Of a stretch of 40,482 bases of DNA, positions 23,243 through 34,782 are shown piece by piece. A program made the position numbers and the translations under genes. Within the stretch, counting starts at the first letter, position 1; each line of letters starts with the position of its first letter. The stretch spans positions 1 to 40,482 of the forward strand of contig JAHLWZ010000770.1 in the NCBI GenBank assembly GCA_020536535.1, written 5' to 3'. A model generated the notes under the pieces. It was not told the origin of the DNA and did not search any database. It saw only the letters and a list, made by a program, of their open reading frames with translations. Source of the stretch: Pelomyxa schiedti (lineage: Eukaryota; Protista; Evosea).

Positions 23243-26200
23243 ATGGCCGCTGTCAGGTGTGTGTCAGTAGTTCCCTGCCTCATCATGATCAATGCATAAA
23301 TAACACGGTATTTCTTTAGTTTAATTAATACCACGTATAGACCGCCAGTATTCCGACCCGTACGGGGATCTGAGTTCAAATACGCTGCCGATTTCACCAC
23401 TAACAAAGCAGTGAATTCTTTTCTTTGCGGAGGATGCAAGGCACCATGGGTTGAACCTGTTACCCACTCTGACTGTGGTGCAACATTTTGTTCTCAATGT
23501 GTTGCAAATGTACGTTTTCCATTTGTTGCATCACTTTTCTAGAAAATTAAATAAATACCTCTTTAAAACTTCATCACTGATTGTTGGATAACTTCCAAGG
23601 TCACAATATGCCCTGGATGTGAATCTCCTTGCACTGCACAGCAAATAGTTCCGTTCCGCGCTGTATCAATCCTCAATACTCTCGACAGCCTCCAAGTTTT
23701 GTGTCCAACATGCCAGAGTCCATTCCCTCGGAAAGAAGTTGTACAGCACTGGGCAAAGTGCAAGATGGGTATGAACCCTTCTTTTTTCTTTTTCCTAGCT
23801 AAAAAACGGACAGACTGCCCAAAAGGATGCGGCGAGAAGGTGGCACCTAGTGAATTCGATGAACATACTTGCCGAAATGCGCTTTTTGTTTGTCCCAGGT
23901 GTTTAGCCAGGGGAAGAAGGGATGAAATTTTATCTCCTGATCATGAGAGCATTTGTCCTTTTGGTAGTCTTCCTCTGCTTGCCTTGTCTGTTCACTGAGC
24001 AAAATAGATTGCCCAAATGGATGCGGAGCTAAATTGACAATTAAAGATGTTCCTCGGCATAATGAATTGTGCACGGAATTGGTGATTACATGTGAAAGAT
24101 GCAAGGAACAGATGAAAAGAGGGAAATACACTGTCGATCACTCACCTTTTTGCCCTATTCGTATGTATAGCTTACATTCTTTAGCTGTCCTAATACAGTT
24201 TTTTCCAGCTTGTGGATGTGGTACCCTTATTCACCCGAAATTGCTTCTGAGCCACTTCGCCTCTGGATGCAAGCTTGCCCCAATTCCCTGTCGTGGCTCC
24301 CCTCTTCTTTGCCCTTGGATAGGTTTAGATCCTTGCCTTGACAAGAAAGTTCGTTTATTTATATTGCCCACAGGTACAGTGGCACTCCGCGATGAACATG
24401 AACGTAATTGTCGTTTCCTCGCAATGTCTGATGTTCTCCAGCCACTTTTGCAAAAAGTTTCTCTGGAGGCACAATGCATAGAATACAATAAATCAGGTAA
24501 ACAGCTATGTGGACAAGATTTCTCCCGGAGGTGTCTGAGATGTTGGGACTTCAGTGGTGCAGATCTGACAGGCTGCAACTTTGAGGGCTCTGATCTTTCG
24601 CATGCAAATCTCAACCATGTGATCGCCTCTGGTGCGAACTTCGCACTTTCAAAGCTGAAGGGAGCAAATCTCGAAGGTGGAAACTTCACTGGAGCGAATT
24701 TCCAAGGGGCCAACCTTACAAAGGCGAACTTAACTGAGGCTATCATTGCGAATGCATATCTTTCAAATGTGATGCTTCAGGGAGCAAAAACAAAAGGCAC
24801 ACGCTTTACTAATTCTCGTGTTATGGGTATGCACCTCACCACAACACCATTTTTTTCACTTCCCACTAAAAAAGATGTGACTTGCCAAACTTCGACGGTA
24901 CCAGCAGCATCCACTTTTAGAGAAAACTACTGGCAGAAGTTTTCCGGTGTTGCCTTGTCCGATAACAATCGAACTGTTTCGAATTCTTGTGCTAAGAATG
25001 GTGCATCCATAATTGCAATGGTTGGAGTTAAGGTTGGGCAAAGTGCCTCCTGGAAAATAAAGCTTGTGGCTGGAAGGGATGTGTCATTTGGAGTTGCACG
25101 GAGCTCCGTGGAGCTAACCGGGACTCCTCCAACGTCAGGCTGCTGGACAGTTGGTAGAACTGCTCTTTCTGGATGCAACGTTGGGGATACCATCAAATTC
25201 TCCTTGGATAGGCTTTATGCCAATTCCCCTTTGGAAGTGAAGCTGGATATGATGGGGCCACGGATTGAAGTACCAATTGTATAGCTCCTTTTCCTGTATC
25301 TTTTGTGAGCTCACACCAAAAAAAACTCGAGACCACTGCGGAAGAAGTTTATCCATTCCTTATTTTGCCACGCCTTGGAGATCAAATTTCCGCGCAATTT
25401 GATGACCTGACTGAGCTATTACAGGATGCCAAGGATAAGCCAGTGCTAGGTGCATCAGTTTCTTCTGGTGTGCTGATCTCTCCTATCTTGTCGACAAAGA
25501 TAACATTTCCGTAGCTCCGCCTGGTGCCCGTAAGGAACCTTCAGGAAGTTCCGAGACAACTGAATGTGGTCTGCATTTCAAAATTCATTCAGTTAAATAC
25601 CTCCATTCATTTTTCTACTTTTAGCGTCATGGCAATTTGCTGAAGATACCCACGATTCTGTCATCTTCTATAATGGAAACATGTCAGTGTTGAATACAGG
25701 CACACAGCCTCAAGTTATAACTTCAACTCCAGCTTGTAGGATAAAGTGGGGAGCATGGAAGTATTGGGAAATGAAAGTACACAGACAATCAAACAAGTTC
25801 TCGGTTGGTGTTACTTGGGACGGCCTTAAACCATGTGTTGGGAAGCCTTGGGAAAAAGGATTTTGGAATTGGGAATCCTCTGGCAGGCAAGTTATTTATA
25901 TTCCTTTTTTTTTTTTATCAACCTTTACTATAAATACAAATCTTCACAACACCAGAACTTGTTGCTCCACTCCCCTTCCTCACTTTCTTTTTTTTGTTAT
26001 TTGTATTCTATTTACACTCTAATAGGACATGGGGAAACGGCTACTTCATGGAACAAAACAACGGTTTTTCAGACGGGGATACAATTGGCATATGTGTAGA
26101 GAGGCTTCACGGCTTTGGCACCCTGCTATTCACCAAGAACGGCAAAGTTCAAACCGTCATCCCAGGAGGACTAGGGATGTTCAACAGCGGCACCATAGTG

Positions 26201-26684: not shown

Positions 26685-28310
26685 CTAGAGGTTGGCAGGT
26701 TTTCCCAGGAGGTCAGACAGAGAGGAGATGGCAAAGTCAGATGCTTGTGGTGGTACTTCTGTTGTTGTCCATGATGGTGTCAAGCTGGAGAAATTCATGC
26801 TGGGAAATGCCTGTGAATAGTCCTGCTGGTCACTGGAGGAACTGGTAGCTGAGCTGTGATTGGGGGTGTTTTCCGCGGTTGACTCGGTGTTGCTGTCAGC
26901 GGTGCTGCCACTGAAGGCCATCAAAAATTCAACAGGAATCCCTGGCCTCGCACTCTTATCCAGTGTTGGGGAAACAGCACTGTCAGGGGCGGGAATTGTC
27001 AATGGGAGTGAAGGGTGTTCCCTTTCTGTTGAGGTTGGACTTGTTGCTTTGGATGTAAGAGGGGAAAGTGAGGTTGTGGTTCCAACGGGAGATGCTGGTT
27101 TCCCTGTAGCTGAAGTGGTGCTTTCCGGCGTTGATGATGCATTTTGTGTGGTAATGACAGTGGTTTTTGCCGTTGTTATTGATATTGGGGTCTGCACTGC
27201 AGTCACCTGAGAGGTAGCGAGTGGGCTGCGTGCTCGGGAAACTTTCTTGCCAGCAGAGGAAGAGGAAGAAGAGTTGCCACTTTGACTGCTTCCACTTTTG
27301 CTGCTTTCTGACTCAGAAGAGCTTCGAGTATGTTTAGGCCGTGACTCTTTTGGTGAGGAAACTTTTTGAGAGACAGGGCTTGGGGAGTGTGGCTGGGGTG
27401 GGGTTGGCTTTGTTGAGTGGTGGGGCCTGTGGTGCTGGTGATGGTGTTTGGGTTTCTTTGAAGGACTGCTTGGAGGCTTTGTAGAAGCAGAAGCAGAAGC
27501 AGGAGCAGGAGCAGGGGGTTTTGCAGAAGAAGTTGACTTTGGTGAGGAAACAGCTGCTTCACTTGGTGTGGAATGAGATGATTTGTTTGAACTTGAATGA
27601 GAAGGAGCAACCGGCGAACTTGGTCTGAGTTTCTCCATTATATGCTTCAACCTAGACACCATCATTTAATCGGTTCTGATTTTGTTTGCCAGTGTAAATA
27701 GGTACCCTCTGGTCCAGTAGTCTGATGCAGTAGGACCCTCGGCAACCAATCTCCAAACACGTGATCCAGTCTTAAATACTATCCCAGTTACCATCTTCTC
27801 ACCAGGTTGCTTTCCTGGAAATGTATGCCAAGCAGCCACTGATTCCAAATCAATGACTCCCTTCCCAAGAGTTGTGAGTGAGTAGTTGAATAGTTACACT
27901 GCCCACCTTGCAACTCTTTTCAGAGCAAAGAGAGTCAGAGTAGTACTTCAATTTGTACAAATCTCGAGAAGAATTGCAGAACCATCTTCGTTGTGCATTG
28001 TAAAAAAAACAAAAGTTTTAGAGATTTTTTAGGTTTTTAAAAACAGGGAATTTCACCTTCTCCGCCATGTCTTGTGAACTGCACCCTCTTTCATCAACCA
28101 TCCACGTAAAACCAGCTCCTGTTTGTGTGATGTGGTGAGATAATAGATTAGAACATCCCTGCGTGCAAGGGTAGTTGGATATTTTCTTGACATTACTTCC
28201 CTGCATGGGGCACCTACCGACTTGTCCAATGTGTTCCAGCTCGTCATCCAGTGTATTCTCTGAAATAACTGAGGAATCAGTTCTGCGAACACTGAGCAGG
28301 TTCGCCACAT
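26685..28310 (-). CDS. PH-domain protein with long S/P/T-rich C-terminus (start uncertain)
   Basis: LRGWLMKEGAVHKTWRRR..F, LKYY, GVIDLESV and RVWRLVAE..SDYW across short introns. Confidence 0.82.
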
Positions 28311-28459: not shown

Positions 28460-31400
28460 ATGACGGCTGCGTTAGCGGAGAGACTGGCGGATATGTTGGT
28501 GTCGGCAGATCTGGGTGTTAATAGGGGCGTATGTGACGATGTGGGGGGATCTTCGGTTTGCGATTGGGTGCTTGTGACGCGTCGCGTGTCGGAAACAGTA
28601 TCGCTGATCAACTCTTTGCAGTGTGAAAATCGCTTCAAGTACCGTACCCCTTTCTTTGTGCTTTTTCTCCCTTCTAACGAAACAAACAAATTAGCTTTAA
28701 AGCATTCGTGGAGAGAATCAAAACAGGACCAGTGACGAATATTGTGGCTATGACGCAGCTTCACTTGTGCTCTCTGATACCCATTTGTGATTCTCTTGAG
28801 GCACTTGGTGCTTCCCATAATGCGGGTATGGGCCAGGTGCCTTTGGACCCAGCCGAGCTGCTTTCTTCACAACTCCGAGGTTTGATCTCAGCTACATTTT
28901 TCTGTCTCTGATCTGACACTATGAATAAGATATGTGCTCACACCAATGCGCTTTCTTCCATGCTCCGCTTTCACTGCTTGTCTCTATTACTTGCACTGAG
29001 AACAACTTTAGCTCAGCGGCAAAATCTCTTGCCAAGGGTAATTGAGAGCACCACTTTCTGTGACCCACAACATTGTAGATGTTATTTCGAGGATCACCGT
29101 TCCTTCATTGTCACAACCTACTTCTAGTGATGATGCACTCACAACTAATCTCATTTCTGCAATTTTTTGCACCATTACAAAATACATGGATACAGTTTTG
29201 GCAACAAAATTTTTTGAGTGGCAGGCATGTTACTGTATTTCACTCACTTTACGGCAACTGATTACCAATGGAAATCAAATTGCAGCTTTGTCAGTTTGTT
29301 TCAATTGAAGCCGACAGTTCCGAAATGAGCTCACTGGAAACTCTGGTGGCTCTTGCCAACTCCTTGAGTGTCTCCCTCAGTGACATTTCATCAACATTCC
29401 AGCTTCTGTCTGAGCATTTTGTGTCCTTTTGGGGAGCACAGCATGTGTTAGAAACAGTTTTCAAAGCCATACAGCATCACTCTCCGAATTGGATGGGCAT
29501 TTGCTCCCTTCTGGTATGCATCAAGAGAAAACCTGTTGATGAAAATTGTGGGGAGGCAAGCGCAACTGCATCATCTCAATCTAGACTAGTGTCATTTGTC
29601 AAGGAGCTACTATCAATTTCGGAACCCTACATGATGGATGTGGGTCTGATCCTAGCTCGCCTTGTACCAAACGATTGTGAGATTTCTGTTTCCACTGACA
29701 ACATGACTTCCACTTTTTACCACAAAATTTTGCACGATGTTTTTGATACAAAACGCTCAAGTCTTTCTGTTCACCGGAACAATATCCTGCAGCAATTGAT
29801 AACACTCATCCCATTTGAAGATGCTCATTTCATCAAATTACACCTCTCATTATTTTCTAAGTACAGTATGCCTTCATACTTTCTTTGGCCACATTAAACC
29901 CTAAACAAATAGCAGCTACTCAAAGTTTCCGAAATTATTGTGAGTTGGCCAAGTCCAAACTTCACACCCTTGAATCTGAATCCTCCCTGGATACTACTTT
30001 CTCAGAAGACAAGTCTGCAGCACAGGATGAAGTCGACATAGCCACAGATTATTTCGTTGATTCTGAGAAAATTCCACATGTGTTTATTCTTTGTTTTATC
30101 TTGGTTAACCACTTTTTAGTCAATACAACAATGGTGGATTGACAATCGCAAGTGGTTTGAGGTATGGATTTGCGTTGTGGAAGGCACAATGACTGATTTT
30201 CCCTCAAGCAAGAATTTACTGTGGCTTTGATGAAACCCTCACCGGATCCCCTTCGAAATGCAAATAGGAGGAAATTTATTAATGCTCTTGAAACAGGGAC
30301 CATGATACCTAAAGGCTCAGTTTCCAACTTCATTAGAAGTTGCTCCTTAGTGCGCTCTCCCGCAATATCTATGACAATGCCTCATTTTTTTCTCCCCTGT
30401 AGGTCTTGGGCAAAGACAGTGGAAAAACATCTGTTGATAGCCTGTTGAACTTTTACCTGGATTGCACTGAAAAAGCCCCAAATGAATTACCTGCTATTGC
30501 CCAAAAGGTTGAGGCAACACTGCTTGATGTCGCGGCACAATGTGATAACAAGCCCGAATGGATGAATGAAGGCACAGCTGAATGTTCTTCAAAGAATGAA
30601 ACGCATCTACTTCAGGGAATTGAGCGCGTACTGAACTGCACTTGCTTTTGTTTGGCAGTTGAAGTACAGCAAAGTGATTTCAGTAACTTATATGTATCTG
30701 ACTGATCTGTAGTCATTTCAATCACCTTTTCATCTAAGTTCTCTCTTGAGCAAAACAATAAATGGAGGGGCAGCCATATGGCCAGGATCTTGGTGCAGCA
30801 GAACCTCGTTACATACACAATGAAATACATCCATAAGCTAAGTTGCTCGGAGCAAGTAGTGTCACAGATGAATTCACTCAATCTGCATTGTATTTCTCTT
30901 ATTTTATTGAATATAGAGAAGAGTCGCACTGAATCCCTACATAATGTTTTTCCCTCTTGGCCAAGTTGTAAACACTAATTCACTCCATAGTTACTTTTGG
31001 AAATGCACATCAATTCTGATTCGTCACTGGCCTTTCTGGCAAGGCTTTGTGCGAGTCTCCTATGTGCAAGTTACAGCAAGAATAAAGGAGGGAGTGGTCC
31101 ACCTGGTGATGATATTCCCTCTTTAGTGCCGCAGTTGCTATGGTGGTCATGGCAAAGGTTAAAACAGTTTCCAGTGTATAACTCACTGTTGGCTTACAGA
31201 ATTCATTGTTACAAGTTACCCCCGGAACCAGTGGCTGAAGCACAACGTCACCTTTCTAATCTTTTGTCCAATGATTCTATGAGAACTTTGATTCTATCAT
31301 ATGGATATTTACCACTCGACACTTGGCTGCATTATGAGTGCGAACTATCTGTCATGCCACTTGGTTGAACAAGTTTTTTCAGATTGGAACTTGACAGTTC

Positions 31401-32779
31401 GGTGCCCGAACTTCAGCAGTTAACAGTATTGCAAAACTGGATTAATGAAGCATACGTTGGTAATCCTAGACCTCAGTCTTTGAAACCTCTTTTCAGTGGT
31501 TTATGTGATGCATTCCTTAGGATGCGCATGGATAATAAGTTGGACTCTAAGAAGCAACCCTTTATTCTAAATCTCTCTTAGCAATCACCATGGCATCAAT
31601 CCCGGTCCCATGGCATCCATTTTGTTGATTTTGCAAAAGCTTGCAATAACTATATCGAGTACCGAAATGCAAACTGATACTCCAATCCTTCATCCCATCC
31701 TGCCTTGCTTAGGTATCGATTCTTCAAGGGGGTTTCAGAAATGATAAATTTCCAGAATCTGGTTGCTGCGGGTGCTCCTCTGTGGAGTTGCAGGACCGAT
31801 ATGAGTTCCTAGTCGTTTTTCCTGCGCACCTCTTCTTTTTACCCTGTACATCTGCATCTCCTTCTCTGGATGTATTGACCTCAGTAATGAGTTTTGTCAA
31901 GAGCCATTTACCTTTGCTGGACCCAACATCCCCAATATGTATTTCTTCCCTTTGCTTTTTTATGCACTGATATCCTCAGACAGCCCTCTGATTGAATTCC
32001 TCATTAGAGGCATCTCAGAAGTATTACTGATACACAACACCCCTGTATTTTCAACTTTTCGTTTCTCCGCATCTTACTTTTTCCGTTTCTTCCAGAACGT
32101 TCTCTCCATGTTTACGGGGGTACTAGAGGGTATTCCTCATCTTATTTCCGCATCTGCTGCGTGCATAGTTGCACTTCCACCGTTCTTGTATGACAATCCG
32201 TTTGACCTTGTGCACTGGACCCGGATTTCCACCAACCACGTTGTTCAGCAATATCTTAGTATCAAGGTTGAAGAGCTTGAGCTGATCAACCCGCCCCCAG
32301 AGGTAACAGTTTCTATCACATCACCTCACGATTTTCTCACCACCCAAACTTAGCTCGTCCCTGTTGCGGCACTCTCCTTCGTTCTGTGTATTTGCATACA
32401 AGCCAGCACACTTCATTGTGAGATTGTAGTACCAACCACAGCCAAGACGGGTGTTTCCTTTCCCCCCATCAGCACTTCAGACGCCAGCCTGGCCAGCCAC
32501 GTTGCTGGAAGTGCACTGGAAATGCTCCGGACTCACAAGAACATGCCCCCTTTGGTTCAACAAATACTCGGCAGTGCCGTAATCGCATCCATCAAAAAGC
32601 ACCCCAAGGCAACACTGCTCAAGTTGCTGGGGGACGGCACATGCCCACCAGATACTTCCGCAATCGAGGTGATCAAGCCACTGTGTGACGTAATGCTTAC
32701 AGCACACGAAAGGAAGAAAATTGTGGACTCTTTGGCTCCTTGTTACCCTGAGTCTTGGTCTGTAGTGCTCTTGTTGTAA
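28460..32779 (+). CDS. FANCA: Fanconi anaemia group A (FANCA)-like large helical protein, multi-exon
   Basis: Ordered blocks match FANCA as recalled: PNWMGICSLL, LILARL, LITLIPFEDAHFIKLHL, FRNYCELAKSKL, AQDEVDIA..F...KIP, NRRKFINAL...IP and DTWLHYELEL. Confidence 0.72.
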
Positions 32780-32886: not shown

Positions 32887-34782
32887 CTATGGATCAGTTG
32901 GAGTGCTGTTATCCTCTGTTCTGTTTTTTTTCCTCTGTGGTTCAGTTGGGCAGCATTCTAGTGCTCCACTAGTGTTATCAATGGCCAGTTCTGATTCTGT
33001 ACCAGTGGATGTGGATGTGGATGTGGATGTGGATGTGGATGTGGATGTGGATGTGGATGTGGATGTGGATGTGGATGTGGATGTGGATGTGGATGTGGAT
33101 GTGGATGTGGATGTGGATGTGGATGTGGAAGATGGAGTTGTGGGGGTTGGGGGTGGACACATGGGTGGATAGGTTAGACTGGAAGCCGTGGGTGTGGACT
33201 CAACACCCCAAAGATCACTGTGAAATTATGTAAGAACAAAAGGGAGTTACACAAGATGGTTACCATATTTCTTTGAACGTTTTGAGTCGCGCTACAGTTT
33301 GAGAGGTGTGTGCAGCAGACCGGCATGGTTGGTATCTACAGACTTGCAGGAGTGTATATTTGGAGAGCCCAAAAATCTCTTTATCATAATATTTGACGCA
33401 CTATACAGAGTTTAGGTTTGCCTACGCCTTACCCCCACGCCAATCAGTACTCATAGTTGGTCACGCACAATACGCAGGTAATGCTTTATGCTTTCATCCA
33501 ATGTTTGTTTCACAGGACAGAAAATTCCAAGGTCACTTAGTACACCTCTGGCAATCATTGCTGACCGCACCCCTTTTGAGTTTGTGTGAACACAAGATGA
33601 AGATAATAAGGCAGAAGAACCAGTGGCTTGCTTCAATTTCTCAATGTCTTCACGTGTCTCTATCCCACCATTTCCAACAATTGGATAATGTGGATCCACT
33701 AGCTTTCGCACGGCAGCAAGTTCCTTCCAACGGGCCTTTACATTGGGCTTGTCACTCGGGTATCTTTTTCAGATGTCAAAAGAATTATCACTTTTTTTTG
33801 AGAACCTTGCATGAACTGCCACAGCAGAAGCACCAGCAGCTCGTAACATGTTAATGTACTCAGCTGTTTTTTCTGGGGTTTCCTGAAGCCTTATTTTACA
33901 TGTTACAGGCTTTGGCTGTGCTCGCACAAGAGCGCCAATTATCTGAAAACTGGTAAAAATAAACACAGAAAAAGTGTGCCACTTCTTGTATGGTTTCCTT
34001 GTTCTCCGCAAGTGCAGCTCCCATTCCTAGGATTACGTGAGTGATGTAAAGTGCAAGCTACTGTAGGTTAAGTGAAAAAAAAAAACGGTACCTCCCTGTA
34101 CTGAGAAGCGCTTTGTGCAACCAAGATTGATATCTTCATTTGCTTGGATCTTGACCATTGATTGGGGAGGGAAACACACCTATAGCGTCAACGTCATTAA
34201 TCCTGCCACCCAGTGAGAAACTCTGATGCAAGAGAGGAGATACATTTTCAATGCAGCCTGCACTGCAGTGCGTGCATTACTTGTGCCAAGCTGAAGTATC
34301 ATAGGGTGGTCCGCTGGGCATGTGCTGAATATTATGGAACCGTCTTTTTCGCAAATGTAGTCAACACGCCCTGGTGGGATGGAGAGTTATATACAATTGG
34401 CTTTGAATAATATTATTCACAGAGGAGAATCAAGGGAGCTCGCGATCACCATTCGGAGATTCAACACGAGTTGTGGTGAGGAGCTTCAAGTCGATGAGCT
34501 CTTCAGAGTACACCAAATTGGCTCCGCACTCTCTCACAAAAATCCTCATTGGCAAATGGCACTAAATCCAACCCATTAGACACCCTCCTTTCCGCAAATA
34601 TGGGAGCAACACCAAACCCCCCCAAAAAAACAAAAAACCATGGGCCAACGCACCACTCTGACCATGGGACCCAGAATCAATCCGCCGGACGTCATCAACC
34701 CCACAACAGAATTCCCCTCCACAACGGCGGGGGTCGACCCACAATTGCATCCTGTACTTGCATCATCCGCAGAGGTACTCAT
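32887..34782 (-). CDS. tRNA-dihydrouridine synthase (DUS2-like) with (ST)n tail
   Basis: LILGPMVRV|CHLPMR, GANLVYSEELIDLKL, ILQLGT, DAIDINLGCTK.FS..GGMGAAL, PVTCKIRL, AVAVHAR, NGG and MIARG. Start may be the later MTSGG. Confidence 0.92.
33005..33129. repeat. (GTGGAT)20 coding microsatellite
   Basis: Perfect hexamer repeat encoding (Ser-Thr)n in the last DUS exon. Confidence 0.98.

Follow-up and report, generated by a model that had tools for sequence, protein, structure and literature searches.

A divergent FANCA-like gene in the archamoeba Pelomyxa schiedti, transcribed, densely spliced and split in the public annotation

Pelomyxa schiedti is an anaerobic archamoeba with a single-cell genome, described without mention of Fanconi genes (PMC8887013). 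Here, we describe a gene for a FANCA-like protein in a 40,482-nucleotide (nt) stretch of this genome (assembly GCA_020536535.1, contig JAHLWZ010000770.1, positions 1 to 40,482 of the forward strand; hereafter the window). The predicted protein resembles human FANCA over a central block, and the gene is probably a single-copy, highly divergent FANCA orthologue of this archamoeba, encoding an all-alpha-helical scaffold of ~1,130 amino acids (aa). The FANCA identification of this protein is already on record in the NCBI nr database, and its novelty is low; new here are the splitting of the gene and the missed exons in the public annotation, the presence of FANCL, FANCD2 and FANCI in the same genome, and an RNA-supported splice junction that breaks the reading frame.

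On the + strand, stop-free stretches with short gaps between them follow one another from the ATG at 28460 to the stop codon at 32777-32779 and make up the gene. A public NCBI protein of 748 aa (P0001) maps exactly to this strand as 13 spliced exons with introns of 40-100 nt, and begins at the same ATG, which the initial annotation of the window had also proposed as the start. RNA contigs (runs X1 and X2), which come from single-cell transcriptomes of the study that produced the genome, map to the 3' part of the gene and reveal five GT..AG introns of 43-51 nt; throughout the gene the introns are tiny and mostly GT..AG. The best model joins exons 1-13 of P0001, a spliced intron at 31338-31382, the RNA-joined 3' exons and the last exon, with the following features:

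28460-32779, + strand: full coding extent of the FANCA-like gene, 19 exons and 1,127 aa in the best model
29295-29865, + strand: largest exon, P0001 aa 166-355, in the N-terminal helical region and the expected place of the Fanconi_A_N domain
31338-31382, + strand: inferred GT..AG intron, 45 nt, a sequence reading with coding-like codon usage on both sides and without RNA coverage
31539-31581, + strand: RNA-confirmed intron, 43 nt, joint in a run X2 contig
31713-31755, + strand: RNA-confirmed intron, 43 nt, joint in a run X2 contig, shifted by +2 to give GT..AG
31939-31983, + strand: RNA-observed intron, 45 nt, joints in runs X1 and X2, reading frame broken at this junction
32045-32095, + strand: RNA-confirmed intron, 51 nt, joints in runs X1 and X2, coding in the second public model (P0002)
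32303-32353, + strand: RNA-confirmed intron, 51 nt, joint in run X1
32354-32779, + strand: last exon with the stop codon, part of P0002, covered by RNA contigs at 32352-32691 with no joint

Given an acceptor at 31979, the best model is a single open reading frame (ORF) without an internal stop, and its length becomes 1,140 aa instead if a GC..AG intron at 29225-29285 is used in the joined model; introns of this type make up 1.59% of those in the P. schiedti genome (PMC8887013). Codon usage in the largest exon is strongly coding (+51 bits). The joined 1,127-aa model was used for the ORF and length check, and P0001, P0002 and the exon pieces were used for homology searches. Because the stop-free chain is accompanied by introns shown in RNA, the gene is real, transcribed from the + strand, spliced, and densely cut by tiny introns. 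The ~4.3-kb spliced gene for a large helical protein claimed in the initial annotation is thereby borne out, with ~19 exons, RNA joints, an all-helical prediction and a length of ~1,130 aa. A model built by greedily choosing introns that maximise the ORF was rejected for its conflict with three of the RNA-confirmed introns. The gene is present as a single copy in the 52-Mb assembly, and DNA contigs of two further runs, a possible source of that assembly, contain the whole stretch. Animal contamination is ruled out by the amoeba-type introns of 40-56 nt and the extreme divergence from animal FANCA.

In NCBI nr, P0001 is named "fanconi anemia group A protein [Pelomyxa schiedti]" and derives from this contig, and the domain precomputed for it in the database is FANCA_helical, the same family as found here; the earlier caveat that novelty would drop if a protist FANCA were already catalogued therefore applies. 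The last exons are spanned by P0002 (266 aa; "hypothetical protein Pelo_9767"), and the public annotation thus cuts one gene into two models. P0001 ends at 748 aa because the 45-nt intron at 31338-31382, left unspliced, leads into a stop. Two exons, 31383-31538 and 31582-31712, are left out altogether, as is the 5' half of exon 31756-31938; the intron at 32045-32095, which is spliced in RNA, is treated as coding by P0002, and the GC..AG intron at 29225-29285 is unused in P0001. The public annotation needs correction, as its FANCA model is truncated and the C-terminal third of the protein is entered on its own as a hypothetical protein.

Comparison of P0001 to Pfam (hmmscan) yielded FANCA_helical (PF24781) at 31.2 bits and E 3.1e-7, over its curated cut-off of 28, with profile positions 2-82 of 82 matched to P0001 aa 389-469; this was the sole Pfam family matching at E <= 10. 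Comparison to the PDB (phmmer, 177,635 sequences) likewise yielded a sole match at E <= 10, human FANCA (7kzp_A, E 0.0031), in which P0001 aa 333-474 align with FANCA 477-630 in a collinear and gap-poor manner over ~140 aa, beginning 56 residues upstream of the Pfam domain. The two matches occupy the following coding spans:

29796-30411, + strand: FANCA-aligned block, P0001 aa 333-474, four exons and three introns (phmmer against 7kzp_A)
30014-30343, + strand: region coding for the FANCA_helical domain, distributed over exons 29916-30079, 30120-30161 and 30209-30349

Searched singly, the exon pieces produced no Pfam match and no match to FANCA in the PDB, even at E <= 10, because the one domain that can be detected is spread across three small exons. 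The FANCA_helical match appears only when these three exons are joined and therefore supports both the splicing and the homology. Sequence comparison shows the central ~140 aa to be homologous to human FANCA from the end of its N-terminal domain through its FANCA helical domain, and this block has roughly the same relative location in both proteins. Six short motifs had been paired with human FANCA strings in the initial annotation, and all six amoeba strings are located in translated exons. Three of the pairs (LITLIPFEDAHFIKLHL, FRNYCELAKSKLHTL and NRRKFINALETGTMIP) lie inside the 7kzp_A alignment, where the human residues equal the strings given in that annotation; the other three are putative, with no FANCA match to their exon pieces at E <= 10. 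Two of the motifs depend on splicing: KFFEWQ|LCQFVS requires the GC..AG intron at 29225-29285, and DTWLHYE|LEL requires the unannotated intron at 31338-31382.

Whether this similarity marks a true FANCA orthologue, the reading we consider probable, has to be weighed against several adverse results. Of the four FANCA domains in Pfam, one was detected. Fanconi_A_N (PF15865) was undetected at E <= 10 on P0001, its parts and the exon pieces, in a region where P0001 may be mis-spliced, and FANCA_arcN (PF24783) and FANCA_CTD (PF03511) were undetected on P0001 aa 470-748, P0002 and the 3' exon pieces. The largest exon (203 aa), compared to 1.84 billion representative proteins with HMMER, had P0001 as its sole match at E <= 0.001, at 97% identity, and by itself it matched nothing in Pfam at E <= 10 and no PDB entry. 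Single-sequence AlphaFold predictions are all-helical, with predicted local distance difference test scores of 39.9 (748 aa) and 49.7 (aa 320-480) that are too poor for fold comparison. Finally, in both RNA contigs spanning 31938|31984 the acceptor used places a TGA two codons on, which ends the ORF at aa 897. No FANCA similarity is detectable in the N-terminal 330 aa or the C-terminal 650 aa, and the P0001 parts, P0002, the 3' exon pieces and the last exon have no FANCA match in the PDB. In word-indexed searches, P0001 as a whole, its region 330-476 and a stretch from the 3' part returned only P0001 and P0002, a metagenome scan found no relatives, and an exact-protein look-up found no record. 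Of the full-length FANCA homologue put forward in the initial annotation, together with its proposed profile comparison, the central ~140 aa and FANCA_helical are upheld by the Pfam and PDB matches and the remaining three domains are not; a full-length FANCA is plausible.

The main alternative, which we regard as unlikely, is an alpha-solenoid particular to this lineage that has only the FANCA_helical module in common with FANCA, is not orthologous to it and works outside the Fanconi pathway. Such a protein would account for a FANCA match limited to the central 140 aa with no detectable relatives of the remainder, and for the mixed language-model neighbours in the ESM Atlas, where AP-5 zeta, Integrator subunits 2 and 5, Mediator 23 and FANCA clusters, all-helical feature neighbours, score 0.87-0.92 with low recognition, a range that is called weak, is below the reliable range and provides evidence neither way. 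PF24781, however, is defined on FANCA proteins, and the amoeba protein agrees with FANCA in overall size, in being all-helical and in where the domain lies along its length. Moreover, no Pfam model of INTS, AP5Z1, Med23 or another rival solenoid matches P0001, even at E <= 10, and a better match to a different solenoid such as Integrator, which the initial annotation had named as evidence against FANCA, was found in neither Pfam nor the PDB at that threshold.

The frame-breaking junction at 31939-31983 bears on a further possibility, that the gene is a FANCA relic heading for loss or that its transcript is mostly unproductive, which would be compatible with either an orthologous or a shared-module origin. 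A tandem acceptor (CAG|ACAG) 4 nt upstream gives a 41-nt intron, 31939-31979, that preserves the ORF, and P0002 uses this 41-nt version. Codon-usage log-odds trained on the other exons assign exon 31756-31938 to frame 2 and exon 31984-32044 to frame 1. The junction may represent unproductive alternative splicing; RNA depth is only 3-6, in one sample. A relic would be in keeping with the premature stop in both crossing contigs, the extreme divergence of the protein and the loss of FANCA in the related Dictyostelium (PMC11061109), but we find it distinctly unlikely, as all 19 exons form one ORF when the upstream acceptor is used, each tested exon has a coding score in its own frame, the ~230 aa past the break included, those residues stay open across two further confirmed introns, and the contrary transcripts come from this low depth in a single sample. 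That the match arose by chance or from composition, between helical repeat proteins that are not related, is highly improbable: the phmmer E-value against human FANCA is modest on its own and single exons give nothing, but the Pfam match exceeds its curated threshold with end-to-end profile coverage, FANCA is the sole match in both libraries, and over 140 aa the alignment stays collinear with few gaps.

Several of the partner genes that the initial annotation had suggested looking for were sought by six-frame Pfam searches of the genome. FANCL, FANCD2 and FANCI are all encoded, with several collinear matches each. FANCL is found on contig C876 (~22.6-23.8 kb, - strand; FANCL_C at 46.8 bits, with domains d3 and d2 matched as well), FANCD2 on contig C113 (56966-59045, - strand; four exon matches), and FANCI on contig C306 (~70.7-75.6 kb, - strand; S1 at 51.5 bits, HD1 at 25.5, S2 at 54.1 and 31.3, HD2, and S4). 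No matches were obtained for FAAP100, FANCC, FANCE and FANCF (PF15146, PF02106, PF11510 and PF11107) or for Fanconi_A_N, and FANCA_arcN had a sole match on contig C954 (E 6.67, 11.1 bits); these blanks are uninformative because the positive control, FANCA_helical PF24781, missed its own domain in the window, six-frame family searches being insensitive in this intron-rich genome. A weak FANCA_CTD match at C690:18776-18898 (18.1 bits, E 0.037, one internal TGA) was set aside as probably due to chance, as the surrounding frame is not coding-like; within the window, neither FANCA_arcN nor FANCA_CTD had a six-frame match. The genes detected in Pelomyxa are the Dictyostelium-like trio of FANCL, FANCD2 and FANCI together with one for a FANCA-like protein; the fuller core complex suggested in the initial annotation would be a hypothetical addition to this set.

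Human FANCA (1,455 aa; chain A of the cryo-electron microscopy entries 7KZP-7KZV) is likewise large and all-helical, with its helical domain about one third along the protein as in the amoeba; the amoeba protein differs in being ~22% shorter and in having no detectable Fanconi_A_N, arcN or CTD similarity. The view in the initial annotation that FANCA is restricted to animals is outdated, since early-diverging fungi such as Mucor have FANCA among the core genes that they carry and express (Barua et al. 2024, PMC11061109), where it occurs alongside FANCL, FANCD2 and FANCI, with FANCC, FANCF and FANCG undetected (PMC11061109). These fungi are opisthokonts whereas Pelomyxa is an amoebozoan, and the two are likened here by reported occurrence. 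Dictyostelium discoideum belongs to the same supergroup as Pelomyxa, and its minimal set, as attributed to Zhang et al. 2009 in PMC11061109, comprises FANCD2, FANCI, FANCL, FANCM and FANCJ, along with UBE2T. The trio FANCL, FANCD2 and FANCI is common to both amoebae; FANCA is not reported from Dictyostelium, in agreement with the initial annotation (PMC11061109), whereas Pelomyxa has the FANCA-like gene. A search of a literature library found no paper linking FANCA with an amoebozoan, and an amoebozoan FANCA would be a modest extension of the known range.

As a FANCA orthologue, the Pelomyxa protein would be expected, by analogy to animals, to serve as a helical scaffold without catalytic activity that associates with the FANCL module (7KZP; PMC10085685) and that helps FANCD2-FANCI monoubiquitination at stalled replication forks or DNA crosslinks, with N- and C-terminal arms that may have diverged past sequence detection. 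More tentatively, this FANCA could be assembled with highly diverged FANCG-, FAAP20-, FANCB- or FAAP100-like partners, with the minimal pathway of Dictyostelium arising by secondary loss, a combination that we consider possible but doubtful. If the gene is a true orthologue, FANCA would predate the split between Amoebozoa and opisthokonts, and the Dictyostelium pathway would represent loss rather than the ancestral state. This would fit a growing view of the core complex as old and repeatedly lost or diverged, to which FANCC-E-F in plants (PMC10085685) and FANCA in early fungi (PMC11061109) contribute; the FANCC-E-F subcomplex has been argued to date to the eukaryote ancestor (PMC10085685).

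Several other features surround the gene. Just downstream, a perfect hexanucleotide microsatellite, (GTGGAT)x20.8, occupies 33005-33129 and gives rise to long repeat "ORFs" on both strands. Beyond it, exons of a dihydrouridine synthase (Dus) lie at 33451-34011 on the - strand, convergent with the FANCA-like gene, with a Pfam Dus match of E 8.8e-9 on one exon. Immediately upstream and divergent, a 326-aa low-complexity ORF rich in Ser, Pro and Thr is present at 26685-27665 on the - strand. Pentapeptide repeats, best known from bacteria, are encoded at 24034-25281 on the + strand, in an open frame of 416 aa (PF00805, E 4.5e-21).

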